Origin: Amoebophrya sp. A120
Taxonomy: Eukaryota > Protista > Dinoflagellata
DNA: 64,000 bases
Direction: 5' to 3'
Assembly: GCA_905178155.1 (NCBI GenBank)
Contig: CAJINV010000005.1
Span: forward strand, 922,564 to 986,563
Shown: piece by piece, positions 6,441-58,896 of the stretch
How the letters are laid out: each line of letters opens with the position of its first letter
Position numbering within the stretch: the stretch's first letter is position 1
Program-made: the position numbers and the translations under genes
Notes under the pieces: generated by a model
Told to the model about the DNA's origin: nothing
The model's database searches: none
What the model saw: only the letters and a program-made list of their open reading frames with translations

Positions 6441-7815
6441 AAGCGAGCAGAACCAGTTAAAGTAAGCGAATGTAAAACTTTAATTTCTACCACGGATGGT
6501 CAATATTAGCTGCGGATTTTTTCCTGTGAAATTTGCTCAACATGTGTTGATGATATCACGATCTAGCAAGTAGATGTCGGTGGAAAACAAACACTACTGT
6601 AAAATTCCATTTCTAATTTAAGACAGGTACTAGAAATGTTCGTACTAGTACAAAAAACCGGTATCATTATCCTTATTGGCATATTCTCGTCACAACATCT
6701 TCACTACCGTACCACCGGTTCTAAGACACCGAGAACCGACCCGCCTCGTGGCCAGGTCCTCTACAAAAAAAAACTCCTATGATAGTTCGTTGTAAGTACC
6801 ATATTTCTTCGACGACACTACAACTTATCCAGATGTGAAAAGGAAGAAGATGAGGTCTGTCGAGGGGCTCCGTGCAACAAGACGAGTAATTTGAACTACT
6901 AGTACAGGCCAACGATAGCTTCCTCCCCCGAAAAATCTCCTCGTGACCAATCGAAGAATGAGTACTAACCCGTAGAAAGAAATAACGACGTGCACCAAAC
7001 CGACAGGGGAAACAACAAGCAGAGTATGAGCACACTGCGATGAAAAATAATGCCAACTGGTAAAACTCCCCGCACGAAAGCCCGAGCGAAAATGACCCTG
7101 CAGAGAACTACGAGTACGACGAGAAGGAACAATTGATTACTAAGTATTGACACCGAGATCATGTTCCTGGCGACATAGACGCTCACGACTTTTCTGAAGA
7201 TCTAGACTTTGTGATGATCCGTTCAAAGCGAACCAGGATACGCAGACCGGTGTCGAGAAGATGAAACATCCAACGAACAAACCGCCCTGACCCAAGATCA
7301 AATCGACCAAAATTCATTTCCGAGGGAAGCAGGAACAATCTCACACCAAGCCTTTGTGTTGCTGCACACCGACGGTGGCCCTCATACAGATACTCTTCGC
7401 ATGGTCTCTTTCAACTACCTGGGACTACAGCGGTGCTCAACCGTGCTGGTCCTCCCATCACAGGAGTGATTTGCAAGTCGGGTGTCTGGATATTTGTAGA
7501 AACCGGCAGAGTCGCGTTCACAGTGGCTGCATCGCGAAGAGAAAGGTCTATCACAATGTGGACTGCAAGAAAAACTGGAGCAAGGCGATTTGCTGACTCG
7601 TGGAGTTCTTTCTCCAGCGAAATTATCTAGTCTAGAGACCAGTTGTAGAAAAAGTTTTTACAGTAGAACTTTGTAGTCGTGGATAGTCACTGGAATTTTT
7701 ATGAACCTCGCGTCCGAGGAGATGAACAACGAGTACGAGCCTCTCGCTTCGCTTGTGAATAATTGAAGTGAGCTGACAAAAGTGAGTACGCGAGTCGGAA
7801 GTAGAGCCGCTTCAT

Positions 7816-9532
<1,717 letters not shown>

Positions 9533-14234: not shown

Positions 14235-16572
14235 TCATGTGAGGTCTATTACCTCCACCGCCTCCTTCACTTCGCCACCAAACACGTGCCCGCCGGGTCC
14301 GCGAACGGACACCGTTCTCCCGTAGCCACCGCCCTCGCCCAGGACCTCCTGGATTCGCAGAAGGTGCTTTGGATGCAGCGCCGCACCGCACTCCTCGTTG
14401 AAGACCCAGCACGGGACGGCTGTGAGGTCGTTTTTCACGCTCTGAAGCTTTATGAAGTGCAAATAAGTATGTCTGGGTCTGGAATTAGAGTGCACAGCTT
14501 TCTTTGTGCTGCTGCCTTTGCATGACACAGAAGGTGGTCGTCTGTCATCATGCAAGCCCTACTAGCATCTTCACAGGTTTTTCGAATTATGGCTCCCAAT
14601 GCTTAGTATGTATCCCCCATGCAAGATCTATTCTCTGCGTCGAAAAAGGAGGTCTACTTGCTGGCTGCGCAGAACAGATTTTTACAATATCGACCAGACC
14701 GAGCGCCACAGGCTCGCACTTCTCTCCCAGACCCCGACATCACGTCTGCAGTGGATAAGCTCCGCCGCCTTCCGGGCTTCCTGGAAGCACCACAGCCGCC
14801 GGTTGTCTGCGGAGTAGAGACCCCGGGCCGCCGGGTCTGCGACAGTCTCGACACTGTGGACCATCAGCGGCGGGAAGTCGAAGACGGTCAGGCCGCCAGA
14901 CGCGAGGGCGTCCCGCACGGCCTCGATGCTCTTCCCGCATTTGAAAACGGGGGAGATCTGCCTCTGGCTGAAGCGGAGTTTTTCCAGCGGCACCAAGCGC
15001 AGCTTCTTCCCTCCCTCCCCCTTCCCCTCCTCCCCGAACCGGCGAAACAGCGCCTCCTGTTTGAGCGCGCACAGTTCGAGCGGAAATAACTCGAAAGGCA
15101 GCTGCATGATCGTCTTCAGTCGGATCACGAGCGTCTTCGAGGCCGGCGGGAATTCCAGTCCGCGCTTTCGCTGTCGCGGCGTAAGGAATTGCTTTGCTCG
15201 ACGGCGCAGCAGGTCCCGCATGCAAATCCGATAGACCCGTTTGGCCACCTCGTGCCTCTTCCGTCGCAGGTCGGCGGGGCTGGTCGTGAAAGGGCTCGCG
15301 GCCTGTAGTTGGGAGGACGAGGATGAACTGCTCAGGCCGCTAGAATTGTCCACATTGCCGTCTTCCACACAACCCAAAACTTCACGTGTCCTTGCCTGCA
15401 GCTGGTCGAAGAACTCTCCACCGCCGGCCCGACCGATTTGTTTCAATCCAACGTAGAACGCTATGCAGTGCAAACCCGTTGCCCCCGCCCCCATTTTGTC
15501 ACGCACATGATGCTTGACGCTGCGATCTGTTTTTGCAAGAAAATTCGAAACGCAACTTCTTCAAGAACGCAGGTCGGCGTAGGTAAAAAAAGGCCAATGC
15601 AGCGTGTAAAAATCTCGGCCAGTTTGATCTTGCAAAAATAAGTTAGTCGACCCATGTAGTTGCATAGATTAAATAAAGCAGCGAAGCTGCTCTTTTTCGC
15701 AACTACAACTCAAAAAGCTGCAAATTAAAAACTCAACAACCAGCTTGGGGGCTGCACCTGCAGGGTAGTTTTTGCACTGCATATGGTCGATCACTTTCTC
15801 GATTTCCAAGTCCGTGGCTGCCGAGGGGTTTAGTACGGTGCTGCTTTGTTGTTCGCGCAGCGTGCGGAGTCTGAAGTCGTTGTCCTCCTCGTCCTGCTCT
15901 GCTAACTCATCTAATTTCAGGTCGTCAACACCCTCCACCAAGTTTTCGAAAACGTCCACTACATCATCTTCCTCCGCGATCATGAACCTTTCGCCCACAT
16001 GTTCATCAGCTCGGCTATTTTCCTCGTCAGGGGCAGAACGCTTCAGCAGCGAAGCAGCAGCAGTGTCTGTGGTAGAAGATGTTGTTCCGTGCGGCTGGTC
16101 GTGGAACGCCGGCACACCGGCTTTCTTGGTTTTCTTAGTTTTATCCCGGAGTAAAATACACGTCCCCGCTCCGTAGGTACAGGTAGGGCTAGGAATAGCT
16201 AGGGCTGCTAGTCAAATTTTTAACGAGGTCTGCAATTTGCGATAGTGACAGACTGTTCTTGGAAGAAAAGCGTAGTCCTCGGGAGGACAAGAAGCTAGAT
16301 AGCTACGCGCAGCCTGCTGTTCAGAGAACGACAAATCTATGTTTGTGTTTCTCGAATAAGATATTAAATAGCAAATAGCTCTCGATTTTTCTTGGAGCTG
16401 CATGCGTCAACTTCTTGCGTGACAACTACCAAAGCGGGCGTGGACGTTTTCCCACAGGATAATTCTCCGCCAGTAGACCCAGCTTCTTGCCACTGGACGC
16501 ATCCATTGTCGTGGCGGTATCCAACAGAAAAGTAGTCCTTACACCCATACCAGAAAAAAGAATTTTCTGTTG
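14235..16572 (-). CDS. Exons encoding an acidic linker and a ParB/Srx-like domain; probably the C-terminus of the RdRP
   Basis: LRFSQRQISPVFKCGKSI...PPLMV...LYSADNRRLWCFQEA (~14770-14985) resembles the FSQ...DNRRL ParB-like family. It is joined in frame through introners 16142, 15462 and 14451; stop at 14235. Confidence 0.65.
14451..14757. mobile_element. Introner, family A
   Basis: TATGAAGTGC..ATGTCTGGGTCTGG ... CCCAGACCCCGACAT..GCAGTGGATA with TSD AGCTT/AGCTC; join KAAELQSVK. Confidence 0.85.
15462..15783. mobile_element. Introner, family F-like, TSD diverged
   Basis: Perfect 13-bp TIR TATGCAGTGCAAA. Flanks AACGC/TGGTC; removing the element plus 5 nt keeps the frame. Confidence 0.72.
16142..16461. 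mobile_element. Introner, family B
   Basis: TATCCCGGAGTAAAA..CGTCCCCGC ... GCGTGGACGTTTTCCCACAGGATA with TSD AGTTT/ATTCT; join LLAENKKTKK. Confidence 0.78.
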
Positions 16573-16577
16573 CTAAG

Positions 16578-16769
16578 TAAAGTCCCGCCACTAAAACTCT
16601 GTAATGCGCAGACCACCCGAACGACAGGCGATCTTGTGCTGTCGTGCAGAGTTATGCAGTCTCTCATGCAAGTTAGCGACCAGAGAGGGCAGAAAAAACT
16701 TTGCTGTGCTGAACAGTCACCAGCAAAACCTTGTCAACACTATGACTCAAAAATAACAACGCAGCTTTA
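16578..16769. mobile_element. Probable old introner
   Basis: TAAAG...CTTTA ends and internal TGTNATGC-like motifs. Removing the element plus 5 nt gives EDEKQQKIL in frame. Confidence 0.5.
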
Positions 16770-19700
16770 CTTTTCATCTTCTTTCGCATGGGTGTAGTAG
16801 TTTTCTGTGCGATAGTCGGGCCTGTCCACAAGATCCGGGTCTTCCCGTACCAACTGCTCTGCGATTTCTTTTATGCAGCGGGAGCCCAAGCTCCAGCTCT
16901 TGGCCTGTTTCCCAACCAGAAACCCCCTCTCGTGCAGTTCCGCATGGACTTTAAGCAGTGCCCGCTGCTTCCGTGCCTTCAGCTTCGCCGGGTCCTTCAC
17001 GCGACCACGCCACACAGCAGGGGAGACAGCGACGCCATCGAGCCGGCGCTCTATGACCTGCTCAAACGTTACAATCTCAAACGTTACAATAGAATCTGAG
17101 ATTTGTCTTGCATGATCAACATGACAGACTCGGACAGCGTCTCACTTTTTGCAATACAAATTTCGCCACATTGTAGTGCGGATTGGGACTCCAGAACTTG
17201 TCATGCGCAAGCCTGTGGGAGTAGGGTAGATCATGCACTTCTTGCAACACAAAGTCCAGATTCTATTGTAACGCTTGAGATTGTAACACCTGAGCGGGTT
17301 ATACGCTCTACGTCGAGAATCCTCTTCAGCCGGAGCGGCGACTGGTATCAACTGCAAAAATGTCTGGGTCTGGAAGAATGCAGGAGATTGTCATGCAGAT
17401 TTTGCATGACCCATGAGGTCTGATGTGATGCATGCCCTAGCATCAGAGATTTTGCGAGGGCTTTCTGATGCTCATACCGCGTGAGAAATTCCCTCTCCGT
17501 GTAGCACAAATTACACCTCTTTTGCTGTTCATGCAATACAGTTTTTATGTAGATTCCAAAAGTAGCATCACAAGTTGTATCCTTCCAGACCCAGACACTT
17601 TTGCATTTGATAACTGGTTCCCCTTCACCATGTCCAGGCAAGTATGGATGTGTCAGAGTTGAAATCGACAAAGTTGAAATGATTTGTCATGCATAAAATG
17701 CGACACAGAGACTGACTCTATTGCTGAAGGCGCAAGGGAGGCAGATTCTAGTGCTGGTAAGGGTCAAGCATTGGGCTGCTGACTAGCATGACAGGGAGCA
17801 GCTATCTTGCCCTGAACAGCATGACAGACTTGCTTCAGAGGCCAGGAAAATTTGTCATGCGCCGATTGGAAACTGTGGGTCCAACTGGTATAGATTTTAT
17901 GCATCACAAATTATTTCAACTTTGTCAATTTCAATCCTGACAGTTCCATAGCAAGCCCGCGCCAGATACGCCAGCCCGATTATCCTGAGGAAAATAAAAC
18001 GTCCCCGCCCCAGACTCATCACAAGATGGGAATTTGCAACACAGATCGACAGCTTTTGTGTGTCGCACATCACAGATTTGGTTTCAGATTGTAGTCGTGT
18101 TTAGTAAAAAGTGCGGCCGCATCTTCACAAACTGATCGCCTTACCGATCGTCGTTTCAGCATCACATCAGAACCCAAAACACAACTACAAAATGAAAGTA
18201 CTTGTTATGGGGCGGCACATGAGAAACATTTCTAGGAGTGCAGATATGCATGACAGAAGTACGGGGGGGGAACGTTTTTGCACAGGATACCGATGGCGCG
18301 GGGGTGCGCAGGGCCGAATCGCTCCACGACGTCGAACCACCGCGAAGTTGCTATTACAATGAAAAATGCCCCCTCCCCATATCAAAACGGAAATCTGTGA
18401 TGCAGAGTTGTGGTCACAAATCAGCTTTGTGATGGTAGAAGGGAAGAGATCATGCGGGTTGTAATGCTGGCAAGCGCACGGACGACTTGCGTCTTCAGCA
18501 TGACAGGAAGCAACTGGAAACGGGAAATAGCATGACAAATTGCCTCCAAACTAGGGAGCCACTGCGTCTCTTTTGGCCTTCTAGCAATACACAACGATTT
18601 GTGTACTCAAATACAGCAACACAAATTTCGTTTTTGATGTGGGGAGGTGAGATTTTTCCTTTTGATAGTTGCGGCTGAGGTCAAAGAGCCGCCAAACTGC
18701 GAAGAATTCCCCGTGTAGCGCAAGTATGCACGGAAAAAAACTGTATTCACACTTCGCCTCAAGCTTGTGGACTTGATGACTATTTCGAATTATGTTGACA
18801 GCATCACAGATGGCCAGGTGGAACGAGAGCAAAATACTTTTTCTAGTAGCATGCAGAGTGGCTTCCCAGTCCCACGAAACAAATGCGACAGTCATGGACG
18901 CTGTTCAGCATGGCAAAACTGTCTTGCCGTTGCGTCGCGTCAGCATTTCTGACGCGAGGCTGCAATGTAACACAGCTTTTTTCGACTCTGATAGCTTGAA
19001 GACTTGTACCATAGCGGCTTTGAACCGTTCGTGGTTGTGCTCATCATCTAGTACTTCTTCGTCTGCCGTCGTAGTCGCCGGGAACGTCCTGTTTTGATAC
19101 TGGAAAGCAGAAGGTGCTCCATTGCTGGTGCCAGATGAACTCGAGGAGGAAAAGAGGCTGCGTCCGACTGGAAATAAAGTAGACGAACTGGAAGTAGACC
19201 GTTCTATTGCGGCACTCGATGTTGACGATGTGGTAGTCGTTGGTCTTGACAAAATTTCTCCCATCGTTTTTCCCAACAGGTTGTTAGTGCTACTTTTTTT
19301 CTTCGCCGGTGGAAGCTGGTGCTGCATGGTTCCTGGAATCGCTTCCGCCAGTAGTGCTGCTTCCTCTTCGATAAACAAGGCGGTCGAGGAGGAGGCCGCT
19401 GTAGCTGTTCCGGGGGTGTTTAGGGTTGTTGACCTAGTGGCAGGGGTTTGCTTCTCTGCAGGGGCGTCGCTTCTGGATAAGGTCGCGGAATTGTCGTCGT
19501 CGTTGTCGTCGCGCTCGATGTAGGTCGTGATCCCTTCCCCGCGCAGGTCCCAGCAGGTGTCGCGAAGGCGTCGGACCTTGTCGAGCGTGGGGGCGTTGTC
19601 TTCGAGGAACTCGACCAGTTCGGGACACCAGCACACCCAGTTGATATCCCCATCGCAGTATTCTGTGTCAAAACGCCCCCGACCCATAGTCTGTCAAGCT

Positions 19701-22700
19701 GGGGAAACTGAGCAGGCAAATCAGCACGCTCTGGCTGTTCTGCGCAACACGACTGGCCTCGTACTGTAGTCCTGTGGAGCTAGTTCAGCAGCATCACGGA
19801 TCTAGCGCATGCGCATCGTGCTGATTGGATCGTCACCAAATCCGAAACACAACGAGAAGCCGTTTCGCATGGAGCTATGCATGAGCAACATTCTCAGACT
19901 CAGCGCGCAGGTTTGCATTACAGCTATGGGGCAGAGGCGTTTTTACATAGGATACGTAGTCCCCGCCACGAAACTCGTCGTTCCCACCGCGAGTGCAGGA
20001 GGTGCTGTCTGCCGTATGCATTGCAAAAAAGTAATATCGCACTTCTAGTAGAAATAATCTTCGCAAGAACATGTAGGTGAGTGTGTACAGAGTGACAGGT
20101 AGAAACTACTGCTATTCCGGACTGCATGCCCGATGAAAAGTGCTCAATAAGGTCAATAAAAAAGCATCTACGCGTCACGCATTTTCTGTAGCTGCGCCAT
20201 AAAGACCCTGCACACGAGTACGATAAAACTTTTGCACAGGATACGCGGCCAGGATGAGTAAGTTGGAGCCCGTGCCGAAGCGCTCGAAGACGTCCATATT
20301 GAAAACGAAGTCGACCAGCTGCACATCCGTCGGCAGGTTCGCCGGACAAGCACTGACTATGTTTTTCCCGGTCAGGTACTTGTATCTGTTGTCGTCGAAA
20401 AACACCAGCATCGCTTCGTCCCGGCGCAGGGTCTGCGTGAAGTCGTACGCGACATGGTATGGATTGCAGATGTGTCTGGGTCTGGAGCCTCGCAATGCTA
20501 AAAGTGAATGATAGACGCACTGGCAGTGGCACTGCAGTGCGCAGCTATGCATGACAAATTTTTTGGCTGCCATGTCGTACGTATTCCGCATGGCAAGCTG
20601 CGTTTTTGCATGACAGGTAAGAGGAATTCTCGCGCCTATGCAACACAGATTCTCGAGTCCTGCCAGACAAGCGCGACAGCCTTGCACTCCTCCAGACCCA
20701 GACACGTTTGCATTTGATACATGGAAATACCGGGAGTCTGGTACGACGTAGCGCGGCTTCCGTTGCAGATACTCCGCCTCCTGCTCCTGCCGCTTCATGT
20801 CCACCGACCACAGATGGATCTGCGGCGTGGCGACTCCAAACCCCGCCGCCCGGAGGCGCTCTAGGCGCTCGGTGGGGTTGGTCAGCTGCAGTCTGGTGCC
20901 GTGGTCGTCGGCCGCTGGCTTCGCAGGCGCGGCGATCTTCCGTCGTTCGGACTTCAGCGCTTCGAAGTAGTGCGAAGTAAGGTTCTCGATACTAACCGCT
21001 CCGACTTTCTCATTCACTTCGCGCCACCGGCGGGGTCGGACATTTTGTATAGCCGGTTGAGCAGGCATGGCCTGGGGCGGGAGAGACGTTGATGGAGACG
21101 ACGAAGAAGATGCTGACGCGACTGGCACAATCTTTCGCTGCACTTCTGCCGCCGGTGGAGGAACGAGTACCTGCTTGTTCGCACTCAAATTCACGGAAGA
21201 GGAAGAACTACTACTACTACTGCTACTACCAGCTCCCTTTTGTCCCGCACTTGCTGCGGCTCCAGCATCGTCCAGAAAGTCACCAACCACAAAGTCTGCA
21301 TCGTCGGCGTTCAACTGCAGGTCTAGATCTAAGTCGTCGTGGGCAAACTTGCTGACCTTGCTTCCACCCGGAAGGACTTTTGCGGCAGCTGCTTTCTTTT
21401 TCGGCCGCGGTCTCTTTTTACTTCCGGCTAGTACAGGTTTACTTTCGTCTTCCTCCGAGTCCTATCAAATGCAAAAATGTCTGGGTCTGGAAAATTGTGA
21501 TGCAGAACTGTGGATGACTGAAATATTTGCCAACGCAACCAAGAAGTATGACAAGTTTGCAGAACGCTCTCTCATGCTCAGTCCGCGTGAGAAACTGCGC
21601 TTTTGTATGACCAAAGAGGGCGCTTTTTTTGTTAGTCATGCAATACAGATTTTCCAGGAGTGTAGGAGTAGCATTACAGGTTCCACGCTTCCAGACCCAG
21701 ACACATTCGCACTTCATAAGTCCAAGTCCACGAAGGTTGCTTCCTTTGTGCGGTCCTTCATGCGGCCACTCTTTCCCTCGTTGTCCTGCAGCCGCTGCTT
21801 CAGGTTCTCTATCGCGTAGCCCTTTTCCCAGTGCGCGTCGTGGATGTTTCTCATAAAGGCGGAAAATTTTTTGCGCTTCTCCACGTTGACGACGAAGTCC
21901 CACCGCTCGTCCGGACTCCTGCGAAAAAAGCTCTCCAGCAACTCCTGGTCTGGGTCTGGCTCTTTGTCCTCCTTCAGTAGAAATCGCTTTTTTTCGTCTT
22001 GCGTAAAGCCAGGAGCTGTAGTTGTGCCCGCAAACGGCGTACTAGCTGCTGCGGCAGTCGCACTCGCACCACCAGCTGCAGATGATGTTGAACCGGCTTT
22101 ATTTCTCTGCTCGTGCTCGAAATACTGGTCTACCAATTCCGACTTTTTTCCATCCGTTGCTAGCCCGGCCTCTCCCAGCAGCTGTCTGAGGTCGGCGATC
22201 TTCATCCGATTCACACTCGACTTGGAATGTTGCGCTGCGGAAGGTAACTTCGATTTCGTGTTTTTGGAGCCGTTTTTGTTCCGCTTTTTCTTTCTCGTCC
22301 CGAAAATCCCGTCGTCACTGGAGCTGTCGTCATCATCTACCAATTCAGAAATATCAAACTGATCTTCCTCAACATCGTCTTCAAAAGCGAGAAGACCATC
22401 CCCAGGTCGATTCTTCAAAAACGCCGAGACTTTCTGCGTGGTCCCGGTCTGGCTTGTTCCGCTGGCTCTTGATGTCTTAGCGGTGGCGGTTCTGTAGCAA
22501 CTCGACGCTCCTGCTCCTGTTGCTCTCGTCGAGACAGACGCGGACGAGGGGCCGAATGGGAGTAAGCAGCTCTTGTTCATCGCGGCGCCCGCCGCAGGTG
22601 TGTGGGCTGCTTGTGGTTTATCAAGAAGAAAAATCCCCCCTCCCCATATCAAAACGGACATCTGTGATGCAGATTTGTGGCCACAAATCAGCTTTGTCAT

Positions 22701-25700
22701 GCTACACGGGAAAAGATGCGGACCGTAGCGCTGGGTGGCGTGGGAATGCCTTGCATCTTCATCATGACAGGAGCCAGCTGAGAGTGGGAAAGAACATGAC
22801 AAGTTGCCTGTAGTCGAGGCCATGACTGCGGCTCTTGGCCATCCAGCATGACAAGTCGATCTGTGGCCTCAAATACAGCATCACAAGTTTCGTTTTCGAT
22901 ATGGGGCAGGGGGATTTTTCCCATCGGTATGGTTTTTGGTTTATTTCCTGCGGCTCCCAGCACGCGAGGAATTCCAGCAGCGGGATGAACTGCGCGTTCA
23001 AAGTTTTGCTCCCCTCCTCGTGCTGGCTGGCGACGATACCTTGCGGGCAGATCTCGAGTGCCTGCTGCACGTCGTCCATCAAAAGGAAAAACTACCCCCC
23101 CCCCATTTCGAAATGGAAGTCTTGTGATGCGGGATTTGTGCACACGAATCGGCTCTGTCTTGCAGTAGAGGACTGCAGACAGATGAACAGCCTGAGTAGG
23201 GGCGTTTTGGTGTAGGCGCCTAGCAAGGCAGGCACGTCCTCCATAGGCCATACAGCATTACAAATTGCCCGCAGATCGCGGCGGCGTTTTTGGATTTGCC
23301 GTCTTGCAAATTGCCCTCAATTCAGCATCACAAATTTTGACAAGTGTCTCGCTTTGGTATAGGAAGGGGGGACTTTTCCTCGCAATATCGTCCAGCCGGT
23401 GTTCGTCCCTGCTCCCTTTGCACATAGACGACACAAACACGACGGGCGCATCGTGTCCGTCATCGAACAAGTACCGGTCGAGGAACAGCATGCCCTTCTG
23501 CACGCCGCTGCGTATCTGGATCGCGGTAATGTGTTATTACAATGAAAAATGCCCCCACCCCGGAACTTGCAAAAGTTTCTCATGCAAAGTTTCCAAATGA
23601 AAGCTTTTTGTCTTGCATGAAAGGACTACGAGCCTTTCCGATGCAGAATCTAGGTGCTCGTCAAGGTATCTTTTGCATAACAGATCCGGCTGCTGCTGGG
23701 CTCTTTTGCAACACAAATTTGAGCTATTCAGCATGGACAATTTGTGATGCTGATATATGCAAGACGGGGGATGTTTCCATTGAAAAGGTTTGCAATACAA
23801 GTGCTGCCAAGTTCTGGGGTGGGGGCATTTTTCACTGTAATATGTGCCCCTCGATGTTCACCCCGTGCACCCGCTCGAGATGGGCTTGCACCCGCGCCAT
23901 CTGGCCCCAGGAGATGCGCCCACCGCCGTCCGACAAAATTTTACCTGTGGTCAACATTTTGGGTTTTAAATCAAAAAGAACTTTTACAACTCTGCGATGG
24001 AACTGCTACTGCTGACTACAAACCACTGCACCACGGGGCTTTTTACCCACAGAAAAGCCACGCACTTCCGGCAGCTGCGTCGAGTATCATAATCGGAGCT
24101 GGGACAAAAAATGGATGAAAAAGAAACTATCTCCACCCAAGAAGGAGAATGAAACGCTTTGAGTACTATTCGATACCTGTTCGGTTCGATTTTATATCAT
24201 CACAGATTGTCCTCATCTGTGGTCGGACGATCGGTCCCCTAAACGTCCGCGAAGAGAGGAGCTGAAACCGCGAAAAGAACTTTCCCGGGGACAGCTTCCG
24301 CACGTCCTCGTCGGTGTCGTATGGCATATGCCATTTGGCGATCCGGTTCGCGACTTCGAAGGGACTCTCGCCTTTCTCCGGAAAAAATTCCACGTAAAGA
24401 AACCTCCAGTTGCTGCAAAACTCGTGGTGCAAACACAACACGACGAACGAGGGGTCTGTTGTGTCTCCTGGTGCACTAGCAGGAACAAGCTCGGTATTGT
24501 CATCATCCAAGAGTAGACCTCCACCGGGCCGCATTTGTAGGAAAGAAGAGCTCTGGGTGGAGGTTTTGTTGGTGCTGCTAATCATCGAAGAGTTCTTGTG
24601 CCCGCCCCAGCTCGTAGTGGCAGTCCCCGCAAATAATGCGCTGTCCTTTTTAGGAAAAACGCGAAGTAAATTTCCAGTCGATTTCGACGAAACGAAGTTT
24701 CTCAACGTGCGCACCACAGTCGGAAATTCGTGCACTTCTCGCGGCCGCTGCGTATACTTCTTCGGCCGCTGCGGTTCCTTCATGTGCTTAAGCTTGGTTT
24801 CATCTAGTTCCGCCATTTCTTCGAGCAAACTTTTTTTTGCAGCACGCGAGGGTGGACTTCTGGCTCCAGTGGAGACGACGTCTTCTGGTAGGTCCAACTT
24901 GTTGTCCAGCAAAATATTCGGATTCAAAAGGGTACGAGTAACTTCTTGTTCTTCCGGCTCTTGCTTTACTTTTTTCACGCCGCCACCGCCATCCGTGTGG
25001 GCTTGTTCAACGGTGTCCTCTACCATCTCGCTCTTCACTTTCGCAGTTCCTGCTGGCGGGGGTCGTGCCGCAGCAACAAGAGCCGCAGGGCTAGTACAGT
25101 CGCCGTCGCTACTGTCGGAGAGAATAATAACCTCAATTTTTCGCTTCTTCAAAGCGGGCGCAACAGCAGCAGCCTCCACTTCTGCTGCACTAGAACATGA
25201 AGAGTCCGGCTTTTTTTCTACTGCCTCATCCGGGATAATATCGCTCATGAAGATGCCTTCCTTCTTTTCCCGCCGGCCGTCTGCGCGAGCTTTTCTCTCT
25301 GCTGCTGCTAGCCGCTTTTTCTCCTCCTGGTTCCGTTTTTTCTCTGCGGCCTTCTCCGCGTCGCGTGTTGTTTTCTCCCGTTTCCACGCCTCGTACTTTG
25401 CCAGGTCTTTCTCGTACGTGGCTAATTCCGTCGAAAACTCCGGCCGGACCTCCCAGACGACTGGAGAGATTTTCACTCCGATCACCTTCCGTCCCCTATG
25501 CATTGCAAAAGCATTGCATCGCACTAGTATAAATTGCATTACAAATTGGCTCAGAATTACTACTTTGCCTTTAAAAAAGGATTTGCTAATGCATAAAAGC
25601 AAGTAGTACGAGTACGATACTTTTGCACAGGATATCCCTCCCTGCCCGCAAATTCCATCAAACGAGTGGAAAGCGCGTTTTTTCGGCCATCGACGCGGGA

Positions 25701-27005
25701 AAACCCTTCCCGATCCCCGTAGTCGCGTGGGTCGGTTGCAACGTGGATTTGCATCATGACCTTTTCCTCTTCGCGACACAGCTCTAGGCTGGCTTGCTTA
25801 CGAGGAGCAGACGGCGCGGCTTCTGCAGAGGTTTTCTGATTCATTTTGTTTTTGTTCCCGCTGTTTTTTATTTTTTCATCATTATTTTCTAACTTCATCA
25901 AAAACTGCGTGCCGGGGACACCCTTGTATCTGCGCTGCACTCTAGAGCGGAGAAGGGACGAAGGAGGTTGTTGGTGCAGGTGCTGCACTTGTTTTTCAGA
26001 AGTAGCAGCCAATGGAACCAAGGCGGTTGTTCTACTGGGATCAAGAACATGATCTTCGGTCTTGATCAACATTTCTTCTTGCTGCTCCTCATCGTCAAGG
26101 ACCTGCTGCTGCCTTTGCTTCCTGCGATCGTCTTGTCGCTTCTTTGTCGACACAAGATCCGGGAAGAAGTCCCCCAGTCGCTCGGCCGGAGTTTTGGTAG
26201 TGCTAGACGTCGGAACGATGGTCGTTACCAGCCGACTGCTCGAGGACGACGAGGAGGAGGAAGACGTTGACGTGGACGAACTACTGCCCCCTCCGCCGGC
26301 AGAAAACATAACCCCGACTGCACCTCCACTTTTATCGCTCATCCGCGGCGCCGACGTGCTGCTACTTTGCCCTTCCGAGAAGTTGCTCCCATCGGCATAG
26401 AAATACCGTCCGCAGTTTTGATTCCGGGCCAGCAACGTCTTCAAGGCGTCAGAGTTTTTATAAACCTCGTCTGGCACCACCCGCCTTTCCCCAAACCGCT
26501 CGCACCAATCGAACTCTTTCGCCTGCATGGCTGACCGCCATACCTTGTACTCCTTGTTCGCCTTGCCCGTTCCGTGCGACAACCCATACGCCTTCCGCTG
26601 GTCAAGCAGCACGGTAGCAAAGTCTTGGTCCAGAAGGATCGGCTTGTCGGCGGCCCGCAACAAGGCTTTGGATAGCGGTTGATCCTCGGCTACGGGTGCC
26701 TGCTGTTGCAGAAAATGATCCGCGGGTGTCGTGGCAGTTGTAGGTTTCACAAACATCCTCGCTTTATTGTCCACCGGGGACTTTGAGGAAGACGAGGAAG
26801 CGCTTTGGCCCCCTCTGGAAGATGAACTGACATTTAACATGATTTTGGTTTTTTTACCATGACCAACCGGGAGGTCGGAAACGGAATCGTCGTCGGACGC
26901 AAACAAAATTGGTAAAGAAGTAAATTGCAGGGTAAGTATCAGGTGAAGAGGCGTTACAAGTAGGGTGTAAATTGGATGAAAACAATTGTGGTAGAAGAAC
27001 TTCAT
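16770..27005 (-). CDS. Eukaryotic RNAi RNA-dependent RNA polymerase (QDE-1/RDR type); 5' end uncertain
   Basis: After removing 14 introners and one GT-AG intron (23945-24176) the frame is continuous. It shows RdRP motifs in order: GKFFSRFQLLSSRT, DDIK, LSDGGGRIS, AIQIRSGVQKG, SSMCK, LNAQFIPLLE, KPRYVVPDSR..DFTQTL, ACPANLPTDV, GGDYDGDINWVCW, LARACLDMVKG. Confidence 0.9.
17052..17303. mobile_element. Introner, family C
   Basis: ~47-bp TIR containing tandem CTCAAACGTTACAAT; perfect TSD CGCTC. Confidence 0.93.
17346..17612. mobile_element. Introner, family A
   Basis: TATCAACTGCAAAAATGTCTGGGTCTGGAA ... TTCCAGACCCAGACACTTTTGCATTTGATA; perfect TSD ACTGG. Confidence 0.95.
17643..17950. mobile_element. 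Introner, family D
   Basis: TATGGA..TGTCAG..TTGAAATCGACAAAGTTGAAAT with an inverted copy at the right end; perfect TSD GCAAG. Confidence 0.93.
17981..18289. mobile_element. Introner, family B
   Basis: TATCCTGAG..AAAACGTCCCC ... GGGGAACGTTTTTGCACAGGATA; perfect TSD CCGAT. Confidence 0.92.
18352..18667. mobile_element. Introner, family E
   Basis: TATTACAATGAAAAATGCCCCCTCCCCA ... TGGGGAGGTGAGATTTTTCCTTTTGATA; perfect TSD GTTGC. Confidence 0.93.
18725..18912. mobile_element. Degenerate introner
   Basis: TATGC...GCATG ends with TSD GCAAG/GCAAA; join KTVLRYTG is in frame with the RdRP. Confidence 0.7.
19659..19954. mobile_element. Introner, family B, inside the RdRP catalytic motif
   Basis: TATTCTGTGTCAAAACGCC ... 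GGCGTTTTTACATAGGATA with TSD CGCAG/CGTAG; join GGDYDGD. Confidence 0.92.
20015..20243. mobile_element. Introner, family F
   Basis: TATGCATTGCAAAA ... CGAGTACGATAAAACTTTTGCACAGGATA with TSD TGCCG/CGCGG; join ILAADSTS. Confidence 0.8.
20458..20719. mobile_element. Introner, family A
   Basis: Family A TIRs with perfect TSD CATGG; join SRYFHVAYD. Confidence 0.93.
21463..21718. mobile_element. Introner, family A
   Basis: Family A TIRs with perfect TSD AGTCC; join VDLDSEED. Confidence 0.94.
22619..22929. mobile_element. Introner, family E
   Basis: TATCAAGAAGAAAAATCCCCCCTCCCCATATC ... GATATGGGGCAGGGGGATTTTTCCCATCGGTA; perfect TSD TGGTT. Confidence 0.92.
23077..23387. mobile_element. Introner, family E
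   Basis: CATCAAAAGGAAAAACTACCCCC ... GGGGGGACTTTTCCTCGCAATA with perfect TSD TCGTC; join RLDDVQQALEI. Confidence 0.88.
23535..23842. mobile_element. Introner, family E
   Basis: TATTACAATGAAAAATGCCCCCACCCC ... GGGGTGGGGGCATTTTTCACTGTAATA with TSD TGTGT/TGTGC; join EGHITAIQIR. Confidence 0.93.
25497..25634. mobile_element. Short introner (138 bp), family F
   Basis: Same ends as the 20015 copy; TSD TCCCC/TCCCT; join AGREGRKVIG. Confidence 0.85.
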
Positions 27006-28431: not shown

Positions 28432-28693
28432 TATGAAATGCAAAAATGTCTGGGTCTGGAAGATTGTAACTTGTGTTGCTGCATTTGCATGTCTAAAAAA
28501 TTTGTGTTGCATGGGCAGCAAAAGGAGTCTAATTTTTGGTACGCGGAGAGGGCACTTGTGATGCGAAATAGGCATCAAGAATCCCTCAAAAAAGCTGGGA
28601 TGCTAGGGCATGCATCACAGACATCATGGCTCATGCAAAACGTGCATGACAAGTCCCAGAATCTTCCCGACCCAGACATTTTTTCATTTGATA
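28432..28693. mobile_element. Introner, family A
   Basis: Family A TIRs with perfect TSD TCCGC. It is an inverted close relative of the 17346 copy; the minus-strand join ILPEAADDGAPK is open. Confidence 0.93.
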
Positions 28694-29646: not shown

Positions 29647-32600
29647 TTACTTCCTCCTCCCGCCACCACCGGTTTTCCCCGGGTCTTCTCCCATGTGCGT
29701 GAAGAGTTTTTCCAGCGTTTTTCTGTCCACGTCCGCGCCGAAGGCGAACGCCAAGGACGGAAACTGCGCTTTCACAAATTCGCAGGTTTGGTAATTGTAG
29801 TACCCATGCTCCTTCGGGGCCAAAATCTTCTCGTAGCATTTCTTTTCCATTTTCTGCAGGTTCAGAATGCAGGGCGCCGGCCGCCAGTCGGGGTTGATGG
29901 ACAACACGAGAAGCTTGGCTGGTTTCGCTTTTTTCTCGAGCGCGAAAAGCGTCTCGATCATATCACAGCACAGCTGGATCTCCGACTCAATGTAGGGCGG
30001 GTTGGCAATTACGGTGAAAATATTTTTTGATGCTTCGTTTTGGTTTATAACTTCATCTACCGCTTCTTTCATTCCGCTCTTCAGACTAGATTTATTTTCC
30101 GTCGGCAAGAGTACCGCCTGCTCGAGCTTTCGCTTCTTCGATGCCGGGTCCTCCACGCGACCGCTTTTCGATACTAGCGCCTCTTCTTCTTCCACTTTTC
30201 TATTACTTCTCTTCGGCTCGAACTGCTCCGGAAACACCTGCGCCCATTCCACCTCATACAGGCTCCCGAGAGACCCGAACATCGTGTCCAGGTTGAAGGG
30301 GCTACAGTACGTGGGCAGGGTGTGGTTGAAGGGCGACGCGTAGGCCTCCACCTGCCCGTTTAAATTCTCCTTCACGAACTCGTACACCGCCGGCCCGAAG
30401 CCCCAATAGAGCGAGCCGGACGCAACTAGGTAAGCGAAGGCGGTGGCGAGGAGGAGGTTCTCCGGGTCCTCGTGTCGCCGTGAAAAAGTGGTGCCGGTCG
30501 TGGTGTCCTTGTGGAGAAGCGAGGTTTCCGTGGCCTTGCCTTGGAGGATCAAAGTCTGCTGACAACGGTGCAGTAGTTCCTCATATTTCTCCTTGGCCAC
30601 GGAAAGTTTCAGACCCTGCAAACCCAGCGACGTCGTCGACTTGGCCGGAGCAGTGGTGCTCGCGGTATGACTTGATGATGATGCTCCAGCACGACCCGCA
30701 CACTGCTCAACATGATTTCCACTGTTCTCTTTCTCCGCAGTGCTATTGAACTGTGACGCAATTTTGTACTCCACCAGACTTTTTCCCTTTTTCTCGACGT
30801 GCTTCACTTCGAGCAATTTCTGCAACAGCTCCAACTTGTCGGCCACCTCGTTGCGCCGCATGCTGGCGAGCTCCTGCTTGGAAATTTTCTTCCTGTTTGA
30901 CGACTTGCTGGACCTGCTTTTCTCCTTTGATCTGCCCCGCTTGTTGTGAAAAGTATTTGCATGATTATCCTCAGAGAGAAGTCTCACCCGGGGTGGAGCG
31001 GGCTTCTCTTGCTCTTCACGTTGAACATTTTCCTCGTCCTCTTCCTCTCCGGAAGAGGTTTGGTTTTCGATCCGCACAGGCTGGCGCTCGGGCGAGTAGT
31101 CATCGGACAGCAGGCGCACGCGCGGAGAGCTAGGTTTGGAGGAAGAACTTGGTCTATTTGGAACCGCTGCAGCTCCTCGCGCCGGTAGTACTGCTGCACT
31201 AGAGGTGGAAGCTGCTGCAGCAGTTGTAGCATGTGTGTTGTCAGCGTTCGTCGAGTTTGACAAAGGAGATTTTTTGACGATATTGTTTTTGTCCGCAAGA
31301 TCATTTTTCTCGTTCCCAACAACGCCATTTTCCCCGCTGGGAAGTGGTGCCGCAGATGAAGTAGTAGATACCAACTTCCCCTTGTGTCGGAACTGCGGGG
31401 GGGAACGAGGAGGCGAATCCGACCCGTGTTTCGCGGTGGAATTCGCCCGTGGCCTCGCGATCTGCCCGGGATGCCGCACGCGCCACGAACTCAGGTGCAG
31501 GAGAATGGATTCGTGCGTTGAAAGCACGACTCTGCTGTTGTTGTCACCCGCGGTAGCTGAAACTGAGTCCATTGCAACATCACGACCCTCCGCCACAAGT
31601 TCTTGTACAACTTGCGCACTGGTGCTAGACAGCGCCAGTCTTGGCGGCGACGAGGACCCTGGTGCGACGACAGCACCCGAAGATGGTGATCTTCGCGCGG
31701 ACAATAAAACTGGGCTCTGCGGACGGGAGGAAGCGGACTTGGACGGGTTGGACGAGGAGACCAACGGATAGTGGTTTTTGTAACTCCCCTCCTCCTTGCT
31801 GCCCAACAACGACCCCCGCTTGCTGCTGCTCCCAACGATCTTCATCCGCTTCTGCGCCGAGATTTCCGGGCGGAAGCAGCGGACCAGCTGCAGGATGTTT
31901 TCGGCTTGCACGGGCAGGAATTTCAGCGGGTCCGGGTCCTTGTACCACCCGTGCGGCCTCCGGAACAAGCCCTGCTCATTTTTTAACTGCTCCTGGAGCT
32001 GCATGATCCGCTTCGCCCGCTCCCGGCGCTCCTTTACGTTCTTAGGCGCCTCGAGTTCCGGCGCCCGGCTAAGTGTGTCGGAGAGGAGCATGCTCGTGCT
32101 CGTCACAGAGGGGTGTTTGGTCATAGTTCCATTTACTATTTTCGGCGATACAGGACCACCCGTCACAGGACGGTCACGGTTGTTGGTGGCGCCTTGCTGC
32201 TCATTCGTCAAGCTGCCCGGAACGATCTTACTAGCCGCGCCTGCCAGGTCCTCGGACGAGTCGGCTTTCACAATGGTTGGAACTGTTTTGCTCGTCGTGG
32301 TTGTACCAATGCTTAAAGTAGATTCAGCCGCGGCGGAAACGGCTGCCACCCCTGCCGCAGAACTAAAAACGGCTGCCACATTAAGATCAGCAGCACGATC
32401 CGCTGCGGGAGGCCCTCCTCTTGCAGTTGTACTGTTATCCTGCAAGAAGCACTTCAACTCCCCCGGCACGGGTATCTCCTTCTCCTTGAACTCGGCGAGC
32501 ATTTTCTCGAAAACCTCTGCAAAAGACACTTTCTCGTTCCTGGCGGACACGTAAAACCGGCTGTAAATGTTCGCCAGCTCGTACTTCATGCTGTCCAGCT

Positions 32601-32760
32601 TGCGCCTCGAAGGCTTGATGTTAGTCATGACCTCCGATTCCGGGCCAAACGCGGCCTCGAATAAGCAGTCACGGAATATCAAATACCGGGCGGACTCGCT
32701 GACGGAATCGTCGACCAGGGCGAGCAACTCGTCATCCGTGTTCGTGGTGGGTTTCGACAT
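29647..32760 (-). CDS. PCIF1/CAPAM-like cap-specific adenosine N6-methyltransferase domain protein; may have further 3' exons to ~28348
   Basis: EAYASPFN..YCSPF..DTMFGSLGS, ANPPY and INPDW motifs behind a long low-complexity N-terminus. Confidence 0.82.
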   Translation of the reverse strand: MSKPTTNTDDELLALVDDSVSESARYLIFRDCLFEAAFGPESEVMTNIKPSRRKLDSMKYELANIYSRFYVSARNEKVSFAEVFEKMLAEFKEKEIPVPGELKCFLQDNSTTARGGPPAADRAADLNVAAVFSSAAGVAAVSAAAESTLSIGTTTTSKTVPTIVKADSSEDLAGAASKIVPGSLTNEQQGATNNRDRPVTGGPVSPKIVNGTMTKHPSVTSTSMLLSDTLSRAPELEAPKNVKERRERAKRIMQLQEQLKNEQGLFRRPHGWYKDPDPLKFLPVQAENILQLVRCFRPEISAQKRMKIVGSSSKRGSLLGSKEEGSYKNHYPLVSSSNPSKSASSRPQSPVLLSARRSPSSGAVVAPGSSSPPRLALSSTSAQVVQELVAEGRDVAMDSVSATAGDNNSRVVLSTHESILLHLSSWRVRHPGQIARPRANSTAKHGSDSPPRSPPQFRHKGKLVSTTSSAAPLPSGENGVVGNEKNDLADKNNIVKKSPLSNSTNADNTHATTAAAASTSSAAVLPARGAAAVPNRPSSSSKPSSPRVRLLSDDYSPERQPVRIENQTSSGEEEDEENVQREEQEKPAPPRVRLLSEDNHANTFHNKRGRSKEKSRSSKSSNRKKISKQELASMRRNEVADKLELLQKLLEVKHVEKKGKSLVEYKIASQFNSTAEKENSGNHVEQCAGRAGASSSSHTASTTAPAKSTTSLGLQGLKLSVAKEKYEELLHRCQQTLILQGKATETSLLHKDTTTGTTFSRRHEDPENLLLATAFAYLVASGSLYWGFGPAVYEFVKENLNGQVEAYASPFNHTLPTYCSPFNLDTMFGSLGSLYEVEWAQVFPEQFEPKRSNRKVEEEEALVSKSGRVEDPASKKRKLEQAVLLPTENKSSLKSGMKEAVDEVINQNEASKNIFTVIANPPYIESEIQLCCDMIETLFALEKKAKPAKLLVLSINPDWRPAPCILNLQKMEKKCYEKILAPKEHGYYNYQTCEFVKAQFPSLAFAFGADVDRKTLEKLFTHMGEDPGKTGGGGRRK

Positions 32761-37238: not shown

Positions 37239-40200
37239 TTAGTCTTCCAGCACGAAGTACTTCCCGATTTCCTTCTGCTCCCGGTCTTTCACGGAGAGCA
37301 TTTTATTGATCCTTGGTCGGTAATTCGTCGGGTCGCGTCGGAAGGTGATGTCCAACTGCTGCAAGAACTGGTTCATACCCTCGACCAAGCTCTTCGGCGT
37401 GGTGGCCGTACACCGCACACCGGGCGTACCCTCGTAGACGATGACGCGATCGGCCAAATACGTGGCCATGATGAAATCGTGCTCGACGATGAAGGCGGTT
37501 TTTTTCGCGTGGAGGATGTACCGCTTGATGACTCGCGCGGCGACGATACGCTGCTCGACGTCCAAGTAGGCGGACGGCTCGTCGATTAGGTACATGTCTG
37601 CCGGTTTTCCGAGCGCGAGCACCAGGGCCACGCGCTGGAGCTCTCCACCTGTGGACGAAGTTGATGAGGGGTTTTATGTCTTGGGCACTTCTGAGGTGTA
37701 CTCACAAACAGTTATTCGCTATTGTTGTCACATGCGGGCGTACCTAGCCGAAGTAAAGATCCCGGCTTATATATTGCAACATGCAAAAAAATTCCTCCTG
37801 TAGTACCTGATAAGTGCTGCACTTCCTGGTCCTTGATTTGCTCGATCAACATGGGTTTGACCACGTCGGACTGGAACTGGGGATGCAGATACGACTCCCG
37901 AATCTTCCCGAGTAGCAACTGCTCGACCGTGCCCTGAAACTTCGCGGTGATGGTTTGCGGCTTGTAGGACACGTTCATCTTCGGCAGCTCCTCCTCTGCC
38001 TCGTCAGATTTCAGCAGACCCGCGAGCATTCTGAGATCGTTGGTTTTGGTGAAATTGAGACACAAGTGCAAAGCAATTTACATAACCAAGAGCAACATGC
38101 AATTCCTTGTTCGGGACGAAAATGTAACACAACACGGCAACTGCTGCAACAAAAATCAATACTCCGCAGTAGTACCTTATGAAAGTTGTCTTCCCGGTTC
38201 CGTTCTGCCCGAGCATGACGATAATTTCACTGTCGCAAAAGTTCCCCGCTTCCACCTCTAATATGAAGCCCTTGCCCTTTTCGCCCATTTGTTTTACCAG
38301 CGCGGGGTAGGGTACGTTGTGCATCCGTTCTTTCACAAGGGTGTCGTCGGCGGAGACTTTGAAGGTCAGGGAGACCTCGCGAAACCGCAAGTTCTCCGAG
38401 GGGAGAAAACCGTCCAGGAAGATGTTGATGCCTGTTTAGTCAGTTGTCGGAAGTGTTGCAACTTGGACTTTAGTAGCGAAAGCGATGCGTGCTTTCAAAA
38501 CAGACAGAACAAATTCAAATTTTAAACACGCAACGTGCAACTGCTTGTACACACCGCGATATAGCATCTACAAGTAAACAATTTTAACTTTAAGTTTCTC
38601 ATACCTTCTCGCACGCTGCTCGGCACGGACACCACACCATATGCGCCGGCGGCGCCCCAGAGACAGCAGACGTAATCGGACAAGTAATCCAGCACGGCCA
38701 AATCGTGCTCTACGACAATGATGTAGTTGTCGTCGCGCATGAGCGTTCGAATCACACGGGAGGCCGCCAGTCGCTGCTTTACATCCAGGTAGGAGGAATA
38801 TCAAATGTAAAAGTGTCTGGGTCTGGAAGAATGCATGTTTGTCATGCTTGTCTGACATGATTCTTAAATCTGTCATGCACGTTGCCCAAGAGCCGCACTT
38901 TTCTGTCATGCGGAGACGCAGTTTGTCATGCAGAATAGGCAACACCTACAAGCTCAGAAACTTGTCATGCTGAGCCAGCACTCGTGGCCTCCTCATGCTA
39001 CGCCACTCAGCATCACAAGTTTCCAGACCCAGACATTTTTGCATTTGATAAGGAAGGTTCATCGAACATGTACACCTGGGCGTCCAGAATCGCCACAACC
39101 AGGATGGCGAACCTGATAATGGAAAGTACAGCGTGGTAAAGTAGTCTTGTATCACGCTTATCAGCATTACAAATTCCACTCTACTTAATTTTGGGAAAGT
39201 TTGCGAAGCTCTGCATTATACAAGGTAAAAAATACCTTTGCAATTCTCCACCGGATAGGTCCTTCACTTCACGGTCGAGCAAATGGTCAATTTCGAGCTC
39301 TTTTGAAAGCGTGTCGGCGACTTTTCTCTCGTCCTTCATTTCCAAAATCTCGCCGACTTTTCCTGCGATCTGAGGTTTTATGAATTTTTTTTTCGGACTA
39401 AAATCAATCGGCGAGGAATAATTCCCAGGAGAAATACAGCCGATTTCAATTTCCTAAATGGGAGCGATGTCGGCAACTCGTTTTTTCAAGAAATTCTCGC
39501 TGTCCCCGCATCTTCCATAAAAAAAGATGAGCAATCTTATACATACCTTGTTCTTAAGCTGATCGACGTACTGCAGCTTGATTGTTGATTTGAGTTTGTC
39601 TTCCAACATCCTGCTAAAGAACGCCTGCAGTTCGCTTCCCCGGAAGTGCTGTAAGATTTCTGACCAGTCTGGTGGCTCGTCGTACCTGTTTTGAAGTTTG
39701 TGTGGTCGTCTTTCTTGAATAACCAACTTCTAGTCTACCCGACCACCAGCGCAGTGTGGTACGAACAATCTGTCGTCGCATGCATCGCCAAGCATGCAGC
39801 AGAAACAGCCGATGGAGAAATAGTAATAGAGTCTGCAAATAAATTCTGCTAAGCGTACCTTCCGAGATTTGGCTTCAATTTGCACGAAAGGACTTTCAAT
39901 GCGGTTGATTTTCCGATTCCGTTGGTTCCTACTAAACCCAGCACCTGCCCGGGTCGTGGCATGGGTAATCGGTGGAGCTTGAACGTGTTTGGCCCGTATC
40001 GGTGCGTGGTTTCCTTACCTAATTTTTTGATTTTTTTCTCATCGGGTAATTCATCTCGGAAGGATAAAGCACGGTAGTACCGCCCGCATCTTGCTACGCT
40101 CGATTGTCAAACGGCGTCAGAAGTTTCTTCTTCTGAAATATGTTGAAATAACAAATATCATTATACCCAAGTCCTTCGGCAAGTTGATGATGTTGATTGC

Positions 40201-48283: not shown

Positions 48284-48295
48284 TGGTGAGGACGC
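48284..48295 (+). other. Putative primer-binding site TGGTGAGGACGC
   Basis: TGG directly after the 5' LTR; primer tRNA not assigned. Confidence 0.7.
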
Positions 48296-58797: not shown

Positions 58798-58882
58798 TGA
58801 CGGGATTTTCAAGTACTACCAGTTTCAGAACGATTTTTGGAAATATCTTGTGTTTCACGAGTAGCCCCGGATCACCATCGAC

Positions 58883-58894: not shown

Positions 58895-58896
58895 TG

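Follow-up and report, generated by a model that had tools for sequence, protein, structure and literature searches.

The window, a stretch of 64,000 nucleotides from Amoebophrya sp. A120, carries on its minus strand a gene that extends from 27005 to 14235 (C5:936798-949568 of the assembly, G000). An exon-wise phase walk resolves it into 20 exons and 19 introns with zero internal stops, and its coding sequence of 7407 nt comprises 2468 codons plus a stop, the TGA at 14235-14237; the start codon is tentative. Eighteen of the introns are MITE-like introners and one is an ordinary GT-AG intron, which gives a load of 2.57 introns per kb of coding sequence. Read without splicing, the frame is interrupted by 99 stops. 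When the element and exactly 5 nt are removed at each of the 18 introner sites, the 2468 codons are restored with the terminal stop alone; in the offset control, out-of-phase excisions left 60-64 stops and the in-phase excisions (+2 and +8) produced one extra stop. Because the frame is open and the exons are homologous to a paralog, we infer that splicing takes place at the 19 junctions.

The 18 elements share their general architecture. All of them start with TAT or TAC, 17 end with ATA, and between 12 and 28 of the first 30 nt are the reverse complement of the last 30 nt. The 5-nt target duplication is exact in nine elements, matches at 4/5 positions in five, at 3/5 in three and at 1/5 in one. 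GT-AG boundaries could be drawn for 0/18 when all placements giving the same inferred product were considered. Compared end to end, no two copies within the gene are more than about 78% alike, and at least five families are represented. Relatives of 12 elements occur in a 200-kb random genome sample, from which they have diverged by 10-28% with respect to the nearest sampled ones; the other six have no relatives within that sample, while the commonest family is found at about 30 places. Predicted folds pair the introner ends (z -8.0 and -2.1), and the elements would be removed from the RdRP mRNA.

The closest paralog lies on the minus strand of another contig, at C1:~12,416,000-12,422,400 (loci L011 and L014), and serves as a guide along the gene. 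Exon 1 (25635-27005, 1371 nt) is an open, low-complexity N-terminal region with no Pfam match in the exon-wise profile search, and has a weak block in common with the paralog at 26463-26675. It is followed by intron 1 (25492-25634), a short introner made up of the element at 25497-25634 and 5 nt more (target duplication 4/5); across its site the paralog is uninterrupted. The RdRP-homologous region starts in the last ~90 codons of exon 2 (24177-25491, 1315 nt), which matches the paralog with 54% identity (tblastn E 3.7e-29) in a piece equivalent to RdRP positions 62-158. Intron 2 (23981-24176, 196 nt) is the ordinary GT-AG intron, and at about its position the paralog reading frame is broken. 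Exon 3 (23843-23980, 138 nt; 67% identity to the paralog, E 1.4e-11) precedes intron 3 (23530-23842), whose element (23535-23842) has inverted ends matching at 28/30 positions and a 4/5 target duplication. Exon 4 (23388-23529, 142 nt) covers RdRP profile positions 190-225 (PF05183 E 0.0043) and is 64% identical to the paralog; exon 5 (22930-23071, 142 nt) is 55% identical (E 4.9e-11). The introners behind them, intron 4 (23072-23387, element 23077-23387) and intron 5 (22614-22929, element 22619-22929), have 5/5 target duplications. Exon 6 (21719-22613, 895 nt) is a low-complexity insert with a SAP domain (Pfam E 4.7e-07, 29.7 bits). After intron 6 (21458-21718, element 21463-21718; 5/5) comes exon 7 (20720-21457, 738 nt), the end of which is homologous to the paralog RdRP core (56% identity, E 3.5e-12). 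Since intron 7 (20453-20719, element 20458-20719; 5/5) is itself open in frame, raw ORF tracks run through it into exon 8 (20244-20452, 209 nt), which corresponds to RdRP profile positions 352-405 (PF05183 E 9.5e-4) and is 54% identical to the paralog (E 1e-15).

The catalytic motif is divided by an introner. Beyond intron 8 (20010-20243, element 20015-20243; target duplication 3/5), exon 9 (19955-20009, 55 nt) ends with RGGDY, the first half of the motif, and exon 10 (18994-19653, 660 nt) starts with DGDINWVCW, the second half. Between them lies intron 9 (19654-19954), with the element at 19659-19954, a 4/5 target duplication and ends that pair in the predicted RNA fold. After its excision the D-x-D-G-D signature is present, and at the GGDY|DGDINWVCW junction the paralog continues uninterrupted, as GGDYDGDLNWVCW.

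Identification as an RNA-dependent RNA polymerase does not come from any exon on its own. Exons 4 and 8 reach 16.2 and 18.4 bits with PF05183, collinear but below the curated cut-off of 23.8 bits, and no single exon attained that value in the exon-by-exon search; exon 8 alone gave no structure match, and a word search with exon 10 retrieved no public protein of 120-383 aa, a result uninformative on the full-length model. The paralog pieces score above the cut-off (53.2 and 41.4 bits), match the Pfam RdRP profile at positions 62-158, 161-255 and 292-410 (E 1e-3 to 2.7e-14), and the paralog matches the QDE-1 structure 2j7n (E 1.9e-9). With E values of 1e-5 to 4e-29 between the window exons and the paralog, homology to a solved structure follows by transitivity. 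The proposal of an RdRP hidden by introners was borne out by a minus-strand gene whose RdRP blocks, tested exon by exon, follow one another in the expected order, and the data support a QDE-1/RDR-type homolog that would be readable only once the introners are removed. The protein may be made and active and play a role in the cell. The gene shares with the QDE-1/RDR family (PF05183; PDB 2j7n, 7y7p, 5fsw) the conserved block order and the D-x-D-G-D motif (GGDYDGD), but differs in being very divergent, in its long low-complexity N-terminus, in the SAP-containing insert within the polymerase region, in a C-terminal extension, and in residing in a genome without detectable Argonaute or Dicer partners.

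Downstream of the catalytic motif the gene is split into very short exons. Intron 10 (18720-18993, element 18725-18993; target duplication 3/5) is followed by exon 11 (18668-18719, 52 nt), which agrees with the paralog residues at the junction, intron 11 (18347-18667, element 18352-18667; 5/5) and exon 12 (18290-18346, 57 nt; 74% identity to the paralog, E 2.9e-8). At intron 12 (17976-18289, element 17981-18289; 5/5) the closest GT...AG option would lead to an in-frame stop. Three micro-exons come next, exons 13 (17951-17975, 25 nt), 14 (17613-17637, 25 nt) and 15 (17304-17340, 37 nt), separated by intron 13 (17638-17950, element 17643-17950; 5/5) and intron 14 (17341-17612, element 17346-17612; 5/5). 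The latter belongs to an abundant family, with about 30 related places in the 200-kb random sample, and its terminal hairpin has a z of -8.0. Intron 15 (17047-17303, element 17052-17303; 5/5) leads to exon 16 (16815-17046, 232 nt), 39% identical to the C-terminal RdRP part of the paralog.

The gene had been thought to end at 16770, in front of an apparent stop at 16767-16769. However, that stop sits within intron 16 (16513-16814), an introner (element 16518-16814) with a 4/5 target duplication, and the gene extends beyond 16770; its frame continues to 14235 through four further introners. The interval 16770-27005, for which 14-18 introners had been counted, indeed holds 14 complete ones, the 5′ part of a fifteenth (16518-16814) and the GT-AG intron. 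The remaining parts are exon 17 (16462-16512, 51 nt), intron 17 (16137-16461, element 16142-16461; target duplication 3/5), exon 18 (15784-16136, 353 nt), which is an acidic region, and intron 18 (15457-15783, element 15462-15783), a probable introner whose inverted ends are perfect over 13 nt while its target duplication matches at 1/5, and for which an alternative GT-AG solution at 15527-15757 is likewise in frame. Exon 19 (14758-15456, 699 nt) is a C-terminal extension with no Pfam match in the profile search, and matches the downstream ORF of the paralog (tblastn E 3e-17). Intron 19 (14446-14757, element 14451-14757; 4/5) is a degenerate introner, and exon 20 (14235-14445, 211 nt) runs up to the TGA stop, its last residues resembling, by eye, the C-terminal region of the paralog.

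Comparison of both copies shows homologous blocks in collinear order, beginning in the first exon and reaching into the downstream C-terminal ORF. Identity is 54-74% where the RdRP blocks are best conserved and 26-39% in weaker ones, and at most junctions the flanking residues continue straight through in the paralog. The C-terminal extension is common to the gene and to the paralog's downstream ORF. The copies differ in that none of the 18 introners is present at the equivalent sites of the paralog, which carries a single introner, from another family, located 6 codons upstream of the position of intron 8; the SAP match was absent from the paralog pieces scanned with Pfam.

Two alternatives to a single intact gene have to be weighed. 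The RdRP part is joined to the downstream ORF because introns 16 and 17 are taken as removed, and these could be separate genes, neighbours in both paralogous loci: an RdRP with 14 introners stopping at 16767, and an independent gene at 16136-14235. The arrangement of dinoflagellate genes in one-directional arrays, the paralog RdRP frame, which likewise stops ~220 bp before its downstream ORF, and the poor target duplications of introns 17 and 18 would accommodate such a division. We regard it as unlikely, since the stop at 16767 falls within an introner that is well formed, its inverted ends matching each other, and since excision of the element plus 5 nt keeps the frame open across four further junctions, up to a C-terminus whose final residues, by eye, resemble the C-terminal region of the paralog. 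About equally improbable is that the gene represents a decaying, non-functional paralog in which selection was lost and introners piled up, giving rise to no correctly spliced mRNA or protein. The very high introner load, the amount of low-complexity sequence, the weak exon-wise Pfam scores, several degenerate target duplications and the lack of a public protein fragment matching exon 10 are what such a relic might display. Nevertheless, rule-based excision leaves a 7.4 kb coding sequence without stop or frameshift and with GGDYDGD intact, whereas the inserted elements have meanwhile diverged by 10-28% from their nearest sampled relatives; neutral decay of such extent would have broken the frame.

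The introner density of the locus depends on what it is compared with. The detector registered 12 matches in the gene versus eight in the rest of the window, that is 9.4 versus 1.6 per 10 kb. Applied to twenty evenly spaced 10-kb pieces of the genome, the same detector gave a mean of 2.65 matches and a maximum of 10, with three pieces at 7 or more. The gene has about six times the density of the rest of the window, yet it ranks near the 95th percentile when set against random 10-kb pieces. Its density is thus higher than that of the surrounding window but within the range of the genome. Dense introner clusters are fairly common in the A120 genome.

These figures bear on a proposed feedback, by which the RdRP would silence transposons and its need for introner removal would couple silencing to excision, protecting the introners. 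Part of the idea holds, as the enzyme, if made, would depend on precise excision of 18 introners, one of them inside the catalytic motif, and the excised elements, according to the predicted folds, would be long, dsRNA-like hairpins. A special link between silencing and introner load finds no such backing. The same detector counts 0-1 introners in each of nine other stretches that carry an RdRP, one of them the closest paralog; a tenth such region, at C1:440-456 kb, contains several. Clusters of similar density are present in ~5% of the random 10-kb pieces, within ORFs without a recognisable Pfam domain. A six-frame search of the 115.5-Mb assembly gave no match to Piwi, PAZ or ArgoL1, although divergent or split genes can escape such a search, and the best E values for RNase III (0.44) and Dicer_dimer (0.15) were not convincing, for which reason even a role in RNAi is no more than putative here. 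Moreover, several families, differing in age, are represented among the elements, pointing to gradual accumulation and not to a single targeted event. The feedback appears very improbable, more so than the two alternatives above. Relaxed constraint, which had been put forward as another explanation of the density, or the ordinary build-up of introners in a gene of low conservation, agrees with a comment in the literature that less-conserved genes are the ones favoured by non-canonical introns (PMC7789003).

Introner elements with non-canonical introns were described in Amoebophrya A25 and A120 by Farhat et al. 2021 (PMC7789003). The introners of the RdRP gene resemble them in the inverted repeats at their ends, the short direct repeats across exon/intron borders, the absence of GT-AG, the hairpin potential and the many families. 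The published 29,850 elements in 115.5 Mb of A120, about 2.6 per 10 kb, compare well with the 2.65 of the baseline sample. There is no difference in kind; the RdRP locus is a dense case, a single gene holding 18 introners, and its 2.57 introns per kb of coding sequence compare with a published mean of 1.42. The direct repeats are of 3-5 nt in PMC7789003, whereas here a fixed 5-nt duplication explains 18/18 junctions. The elements of Aureococcus use canonical splicing motifs according to Farhat et al. (PMC7789003), unlike the introners of the RdRP gene. Both share features with the MITE type, non-autonomous DNA transposons whose insertion makes an intron with the target duplication at its borders. 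Such introners are reportedly present in Micromonas, Aureococcus and Polarella, in work ascribed to Gozashti et al. 2022.

Taken as a whole, we consider it probable that the locus harbours an intact, divergent paralog of a QDE-1/RDR-type RdRP whose load stems from general introner spread, with no specific relationship to silencing. Relative to its closest paralog, the gene carries the SAP-containing insert. After the duplication, 18 non-autonomous DNA-transposon derivatives of at least five families would have inserted into the coding sequence, each generating a 5-bp target duplication. A readable message would arise only if every element, together with one copy of the duplication, is exactly removed from the pre-mRNA; the published model proposes that the inverted ends fold into a hairpin, which draws the ends of the exons close to each other, and that boundaries are non-GT-AG (PMC7789003). 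The high load of this gene would then reflect a general, strongly clustered spread of introners into the poorly conserved genes of the A120 genome.

On the minus strand of the window an RdRP-like gene runs from 27005 to 14235 (12,771 bp) and is divided into 20 exons by 19 introns, numbered here 5′ to 3′. Eighteen of the introns are introners, that is, MITE-like elements acting as introns, and the remaining one is an ordinary GT-AG intron (23981-24176). Once the 5364 intronic nt are removed, 7407 nt of coding sequence remain (2468 codons). The sequence-only reading had placed an RdRP cut by 14-18 introners at 16770-27005; the reading frame and the comparison with the closest RdRP relative in the same genome bear out the fragmentation and enlarge it to 18 introners and 20 exons, while its boundary at 16770 has to be given up. 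A first model of 16 exons likewise ended at 16767, at a stop that the structural detector places within an introner (16518-16814). The frame continues through four more elements, removed by the same excision rule, to the terminal TGA at 14235-14237. The model was obtained by an exon-by-exon phase walk from coordinates, carrying only the one or two bases of split codons between exons, and each gap was read on the gene strand to place the introner boundaries.

More than 60% of the introns of A120 are non-canonical and 29,850 are repeated; its introner elements have 8-20-nt inverted repeats, 3-5-nt direct repeats across their borders and the potential to form hairpins (Farhat et al. 2021, PMC7789003). 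Repeat finding detects numerous 250-320-bp units with inverted ends in the window. The introners of the gene start with TAT (TAC once), finish with ATA (ATG once), and possess terminal inverted repeats and a 5-nt direct repeat on each side. When the element and one copy of the repeat are removed, the flanking codons join into the uninterrupted sequence of the paralog. At intron 9, which divides the catalytic motif, the resulting junction, ...RGGDY + DGDINWVCW, matches GGDYDGDLNWVCW of the paralog. The rule was controlled by removing each element plus k nt: k = 5 alone gives no internal stop, k = 2 or 8 gives one extra, offsets in the other phases give 60-64 and the unspliced frame contains 99. 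At 17304-17975 three micro-exons follow one another (25, 25 and 37 nt), each with an introner on both sides, and 144 nt of coding sequence hold four introners.

Excision at GT-AG boundaries was considered for these elements and rejected. None of the 18 introners allows GT-AG at any placement that yields the same product, and at intron 12 the nearest GT…AG pair produces an in-frame stop. Intron 18 is the weakest introner: only 1 of 5 positions of its direct repeat agrees, and a different GT-AG solution would also keep the frame. Predicted RNA folds pair the ends of the elements, with z-scores of −8.0 for intron 14 and −2.1 for intron 9. The gene supports the view that the element, rather than GT-AG signals, would define where excision takes place. 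Because the 7.4-kb frame and the catalytic motif are intact despite elements diverged by 10-28% from their sampled relatives, the sequence argues that selection has maintained the gene and that the introners are removed exactly from its message.

A Pfam search of the raw minus-strand ORFs gave one weak RdRP match (E 0.0059) and a SAP domain. Along the gene model, exons 4 and 8 match the RdRP profile PF05183 in order, at positions 190-225 (E 0.0043) and 352-405 (E 9.5e-4). The SAP (DNA/RNA-binding) domain is in exon 6 (21719-22613; E 4.7e-7), within a low-complexity insert of the polymerase region; this stretch has little counterpart in the paralog, whose Pfam-scanned pieces contain no SAP match. 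A ParB/Srx-like C-terminal domain, considered as a candidate, gave no Pfam match at E ≤ 0.01. In a six-frame search of the genome (115.5 Mb in 401 contigs, with the window at C5:922564-986563), PF05183 found 14 matches at about nine loci, mostly in long open frames; the gene described here is missing from this list because the scoring covers only the best candidates. No match came from public proteins word-searched with exon 10, or from metagenomes scanned with the conserved terminal part of exon 2. Membership in the RdRP family, as the sequence-only reading had it, is supported by exon matches in collinear order, by a catalytic motif that is intact and by homology with the paralog.

The paralog, located on the minus strand of contig 1 at about 12.416-12.422 Mb, is clearly an RdRP. 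Matches of its pieces to PF05183 cover positions 62-158, 161-255 and 292-410 (E 1e-3 to 2.7e-14), and among solved structures those of QDE-1 are closest to it (2j7n, E 1.9e-9). Translated, these pieces align to the minus strand of the window as strictly collinear short blocks from 26675 to 15039; identity is 54-74% where the RdRP blocks are best conserved and 26-39% in weaker blocks. The paralog lacks all 18 introners of the window gene at the equivalent positions. One introner is its own (about 7130-7480 of locus L011, minus strand); this element belongs to the abundant family and is open in frame by chance. It is positioned 6 codons upstream of where intron 8 interrupts the window gene, and intron 8 belongs to a different family. 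The two are independent insertions within about 20 nt of each other.

The introners of the window gene fall into several families, and no two of them are more than about 78% alike when whole elements are compared. Their best relatives in a random sample of the genome share 72-90% identity with them; 6 of the 18 have no relative there. This pattern points to elements that accumulated gradually and independently once the gene had been duplicated. The abundant family has copies in the gene at 14451-14757, 17346-17612, 20458-20719 and 21463-21718; for most pairs of these, internal sequence favours a shared direction with respect to transcription, but two pairs are weak or ambiguous and four copies are too few to call a strand bias.

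Introner density was measured with a detector that accepted an element if its ends read TA[TC]…[AG]TA, its inverted repeats agreed at 14 or more of 24 positions and its direct repeats at 4 or more of 5; shuffled windows gave 0-5 matches. The gene (12.77 kb) contains 12 matches, 9.4 per 10 kb, against 8 in the remaining 51 kb of the window, 1.6 per 10 kb. The gene is denser than the rest of the window but stays within the range of the genome. Twenty evenly spaced 10-kb pieces, all from contig 1, gave counts of 0-10 (mean 2.65 per 10 kb) and are strongly over-dispersed (variance/mean 3.1). In a negative-binomial fit the gene lies near the 95th-97th percentile: it is not unique in its density, which a few hundred other 10-kb stretches should equal genome-wide. 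The densest pieces contain 10, 8 and 7 introner-like elements (L017, at C1:500001-510000, L021 and L018). The ORFs of L017 and L021, the two densest, have no Pfam match, which fits the published tendency of non-canonical introns to lie in less-conserved genes (PMC7789003). The gene's intron density, 2.57 per kb of CDS, is 1.8 times the published mean of 1.42 (PMC7789003), a difference with a Poisson P of about 0.012 if over-dispersion is ignored.

Elsewhere in the window, further introner-like elements that share this end signature and have 5-bp repeats are found at 427-711, 995-1264, 4215-4518 and 5191-5419; others lie at 28432-28693, 38799-39050 and 43553-43805, and the one at 3920-4143 is doubtful. 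The window also contains ORFs for a GalE-like NAD-dependent epimerase (8444-9250), a protein with a PCIF1 WW domain (29647-32760) and a Lys/Orn N-monooxygenase-like flavoprotein (43737-45677). Direct repeats of 1041 bp (47244-48284 and 58897-59937) flank a plus-strand ORF of 2912 aa (50059-58797) with a weak integrase-core match, and the whole, 47244-59937, looks like a full-length LTR retrotransposon.

From the dependence of this RdRP, which would amplify siRNA, on introner removal, the sequence-only reading had inferred a feedback between RNA silencing and introners. It finds no support, given that density is not unique and that, with the same detector, seven other RdRP-bearing stretches (L001-L006 and L009) and the 19 kb round the paralog (L011 and L014) carry 0-1 introner matches; the RdRP region at C1:440-456 kb carries several. 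Piwi, PAZ and ArgoL1 had no match in six-frame searches of the genome, where RNase III reached only E 0.44 and Dicer_dimer only E 0.15 (C6:552672-552881), results that do not prove absence. It is conceivable, though very improbable, that the expanded RdRP family of approximately nine loci works in an Argonaute-independent pathway on the abundant hairpin RNAs from excised introners. An RdRP whose own message has to lose 18 introners would in that case act as a sensor of excision capacity or be coupled to it. The gene opens no new question on RNA silencing. Its value lies in being a clean worked example of introner behaviour in Amoebophrya, in which removal of the element with its 5-nt duplication restores a frame of 2468 codons over 18 insertions. 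It gathers 25-nt micro-exons, an introner within the catalytic motif and an introner that masks the true continuation behind a false stop, and is useful for gene annotation in this genome.
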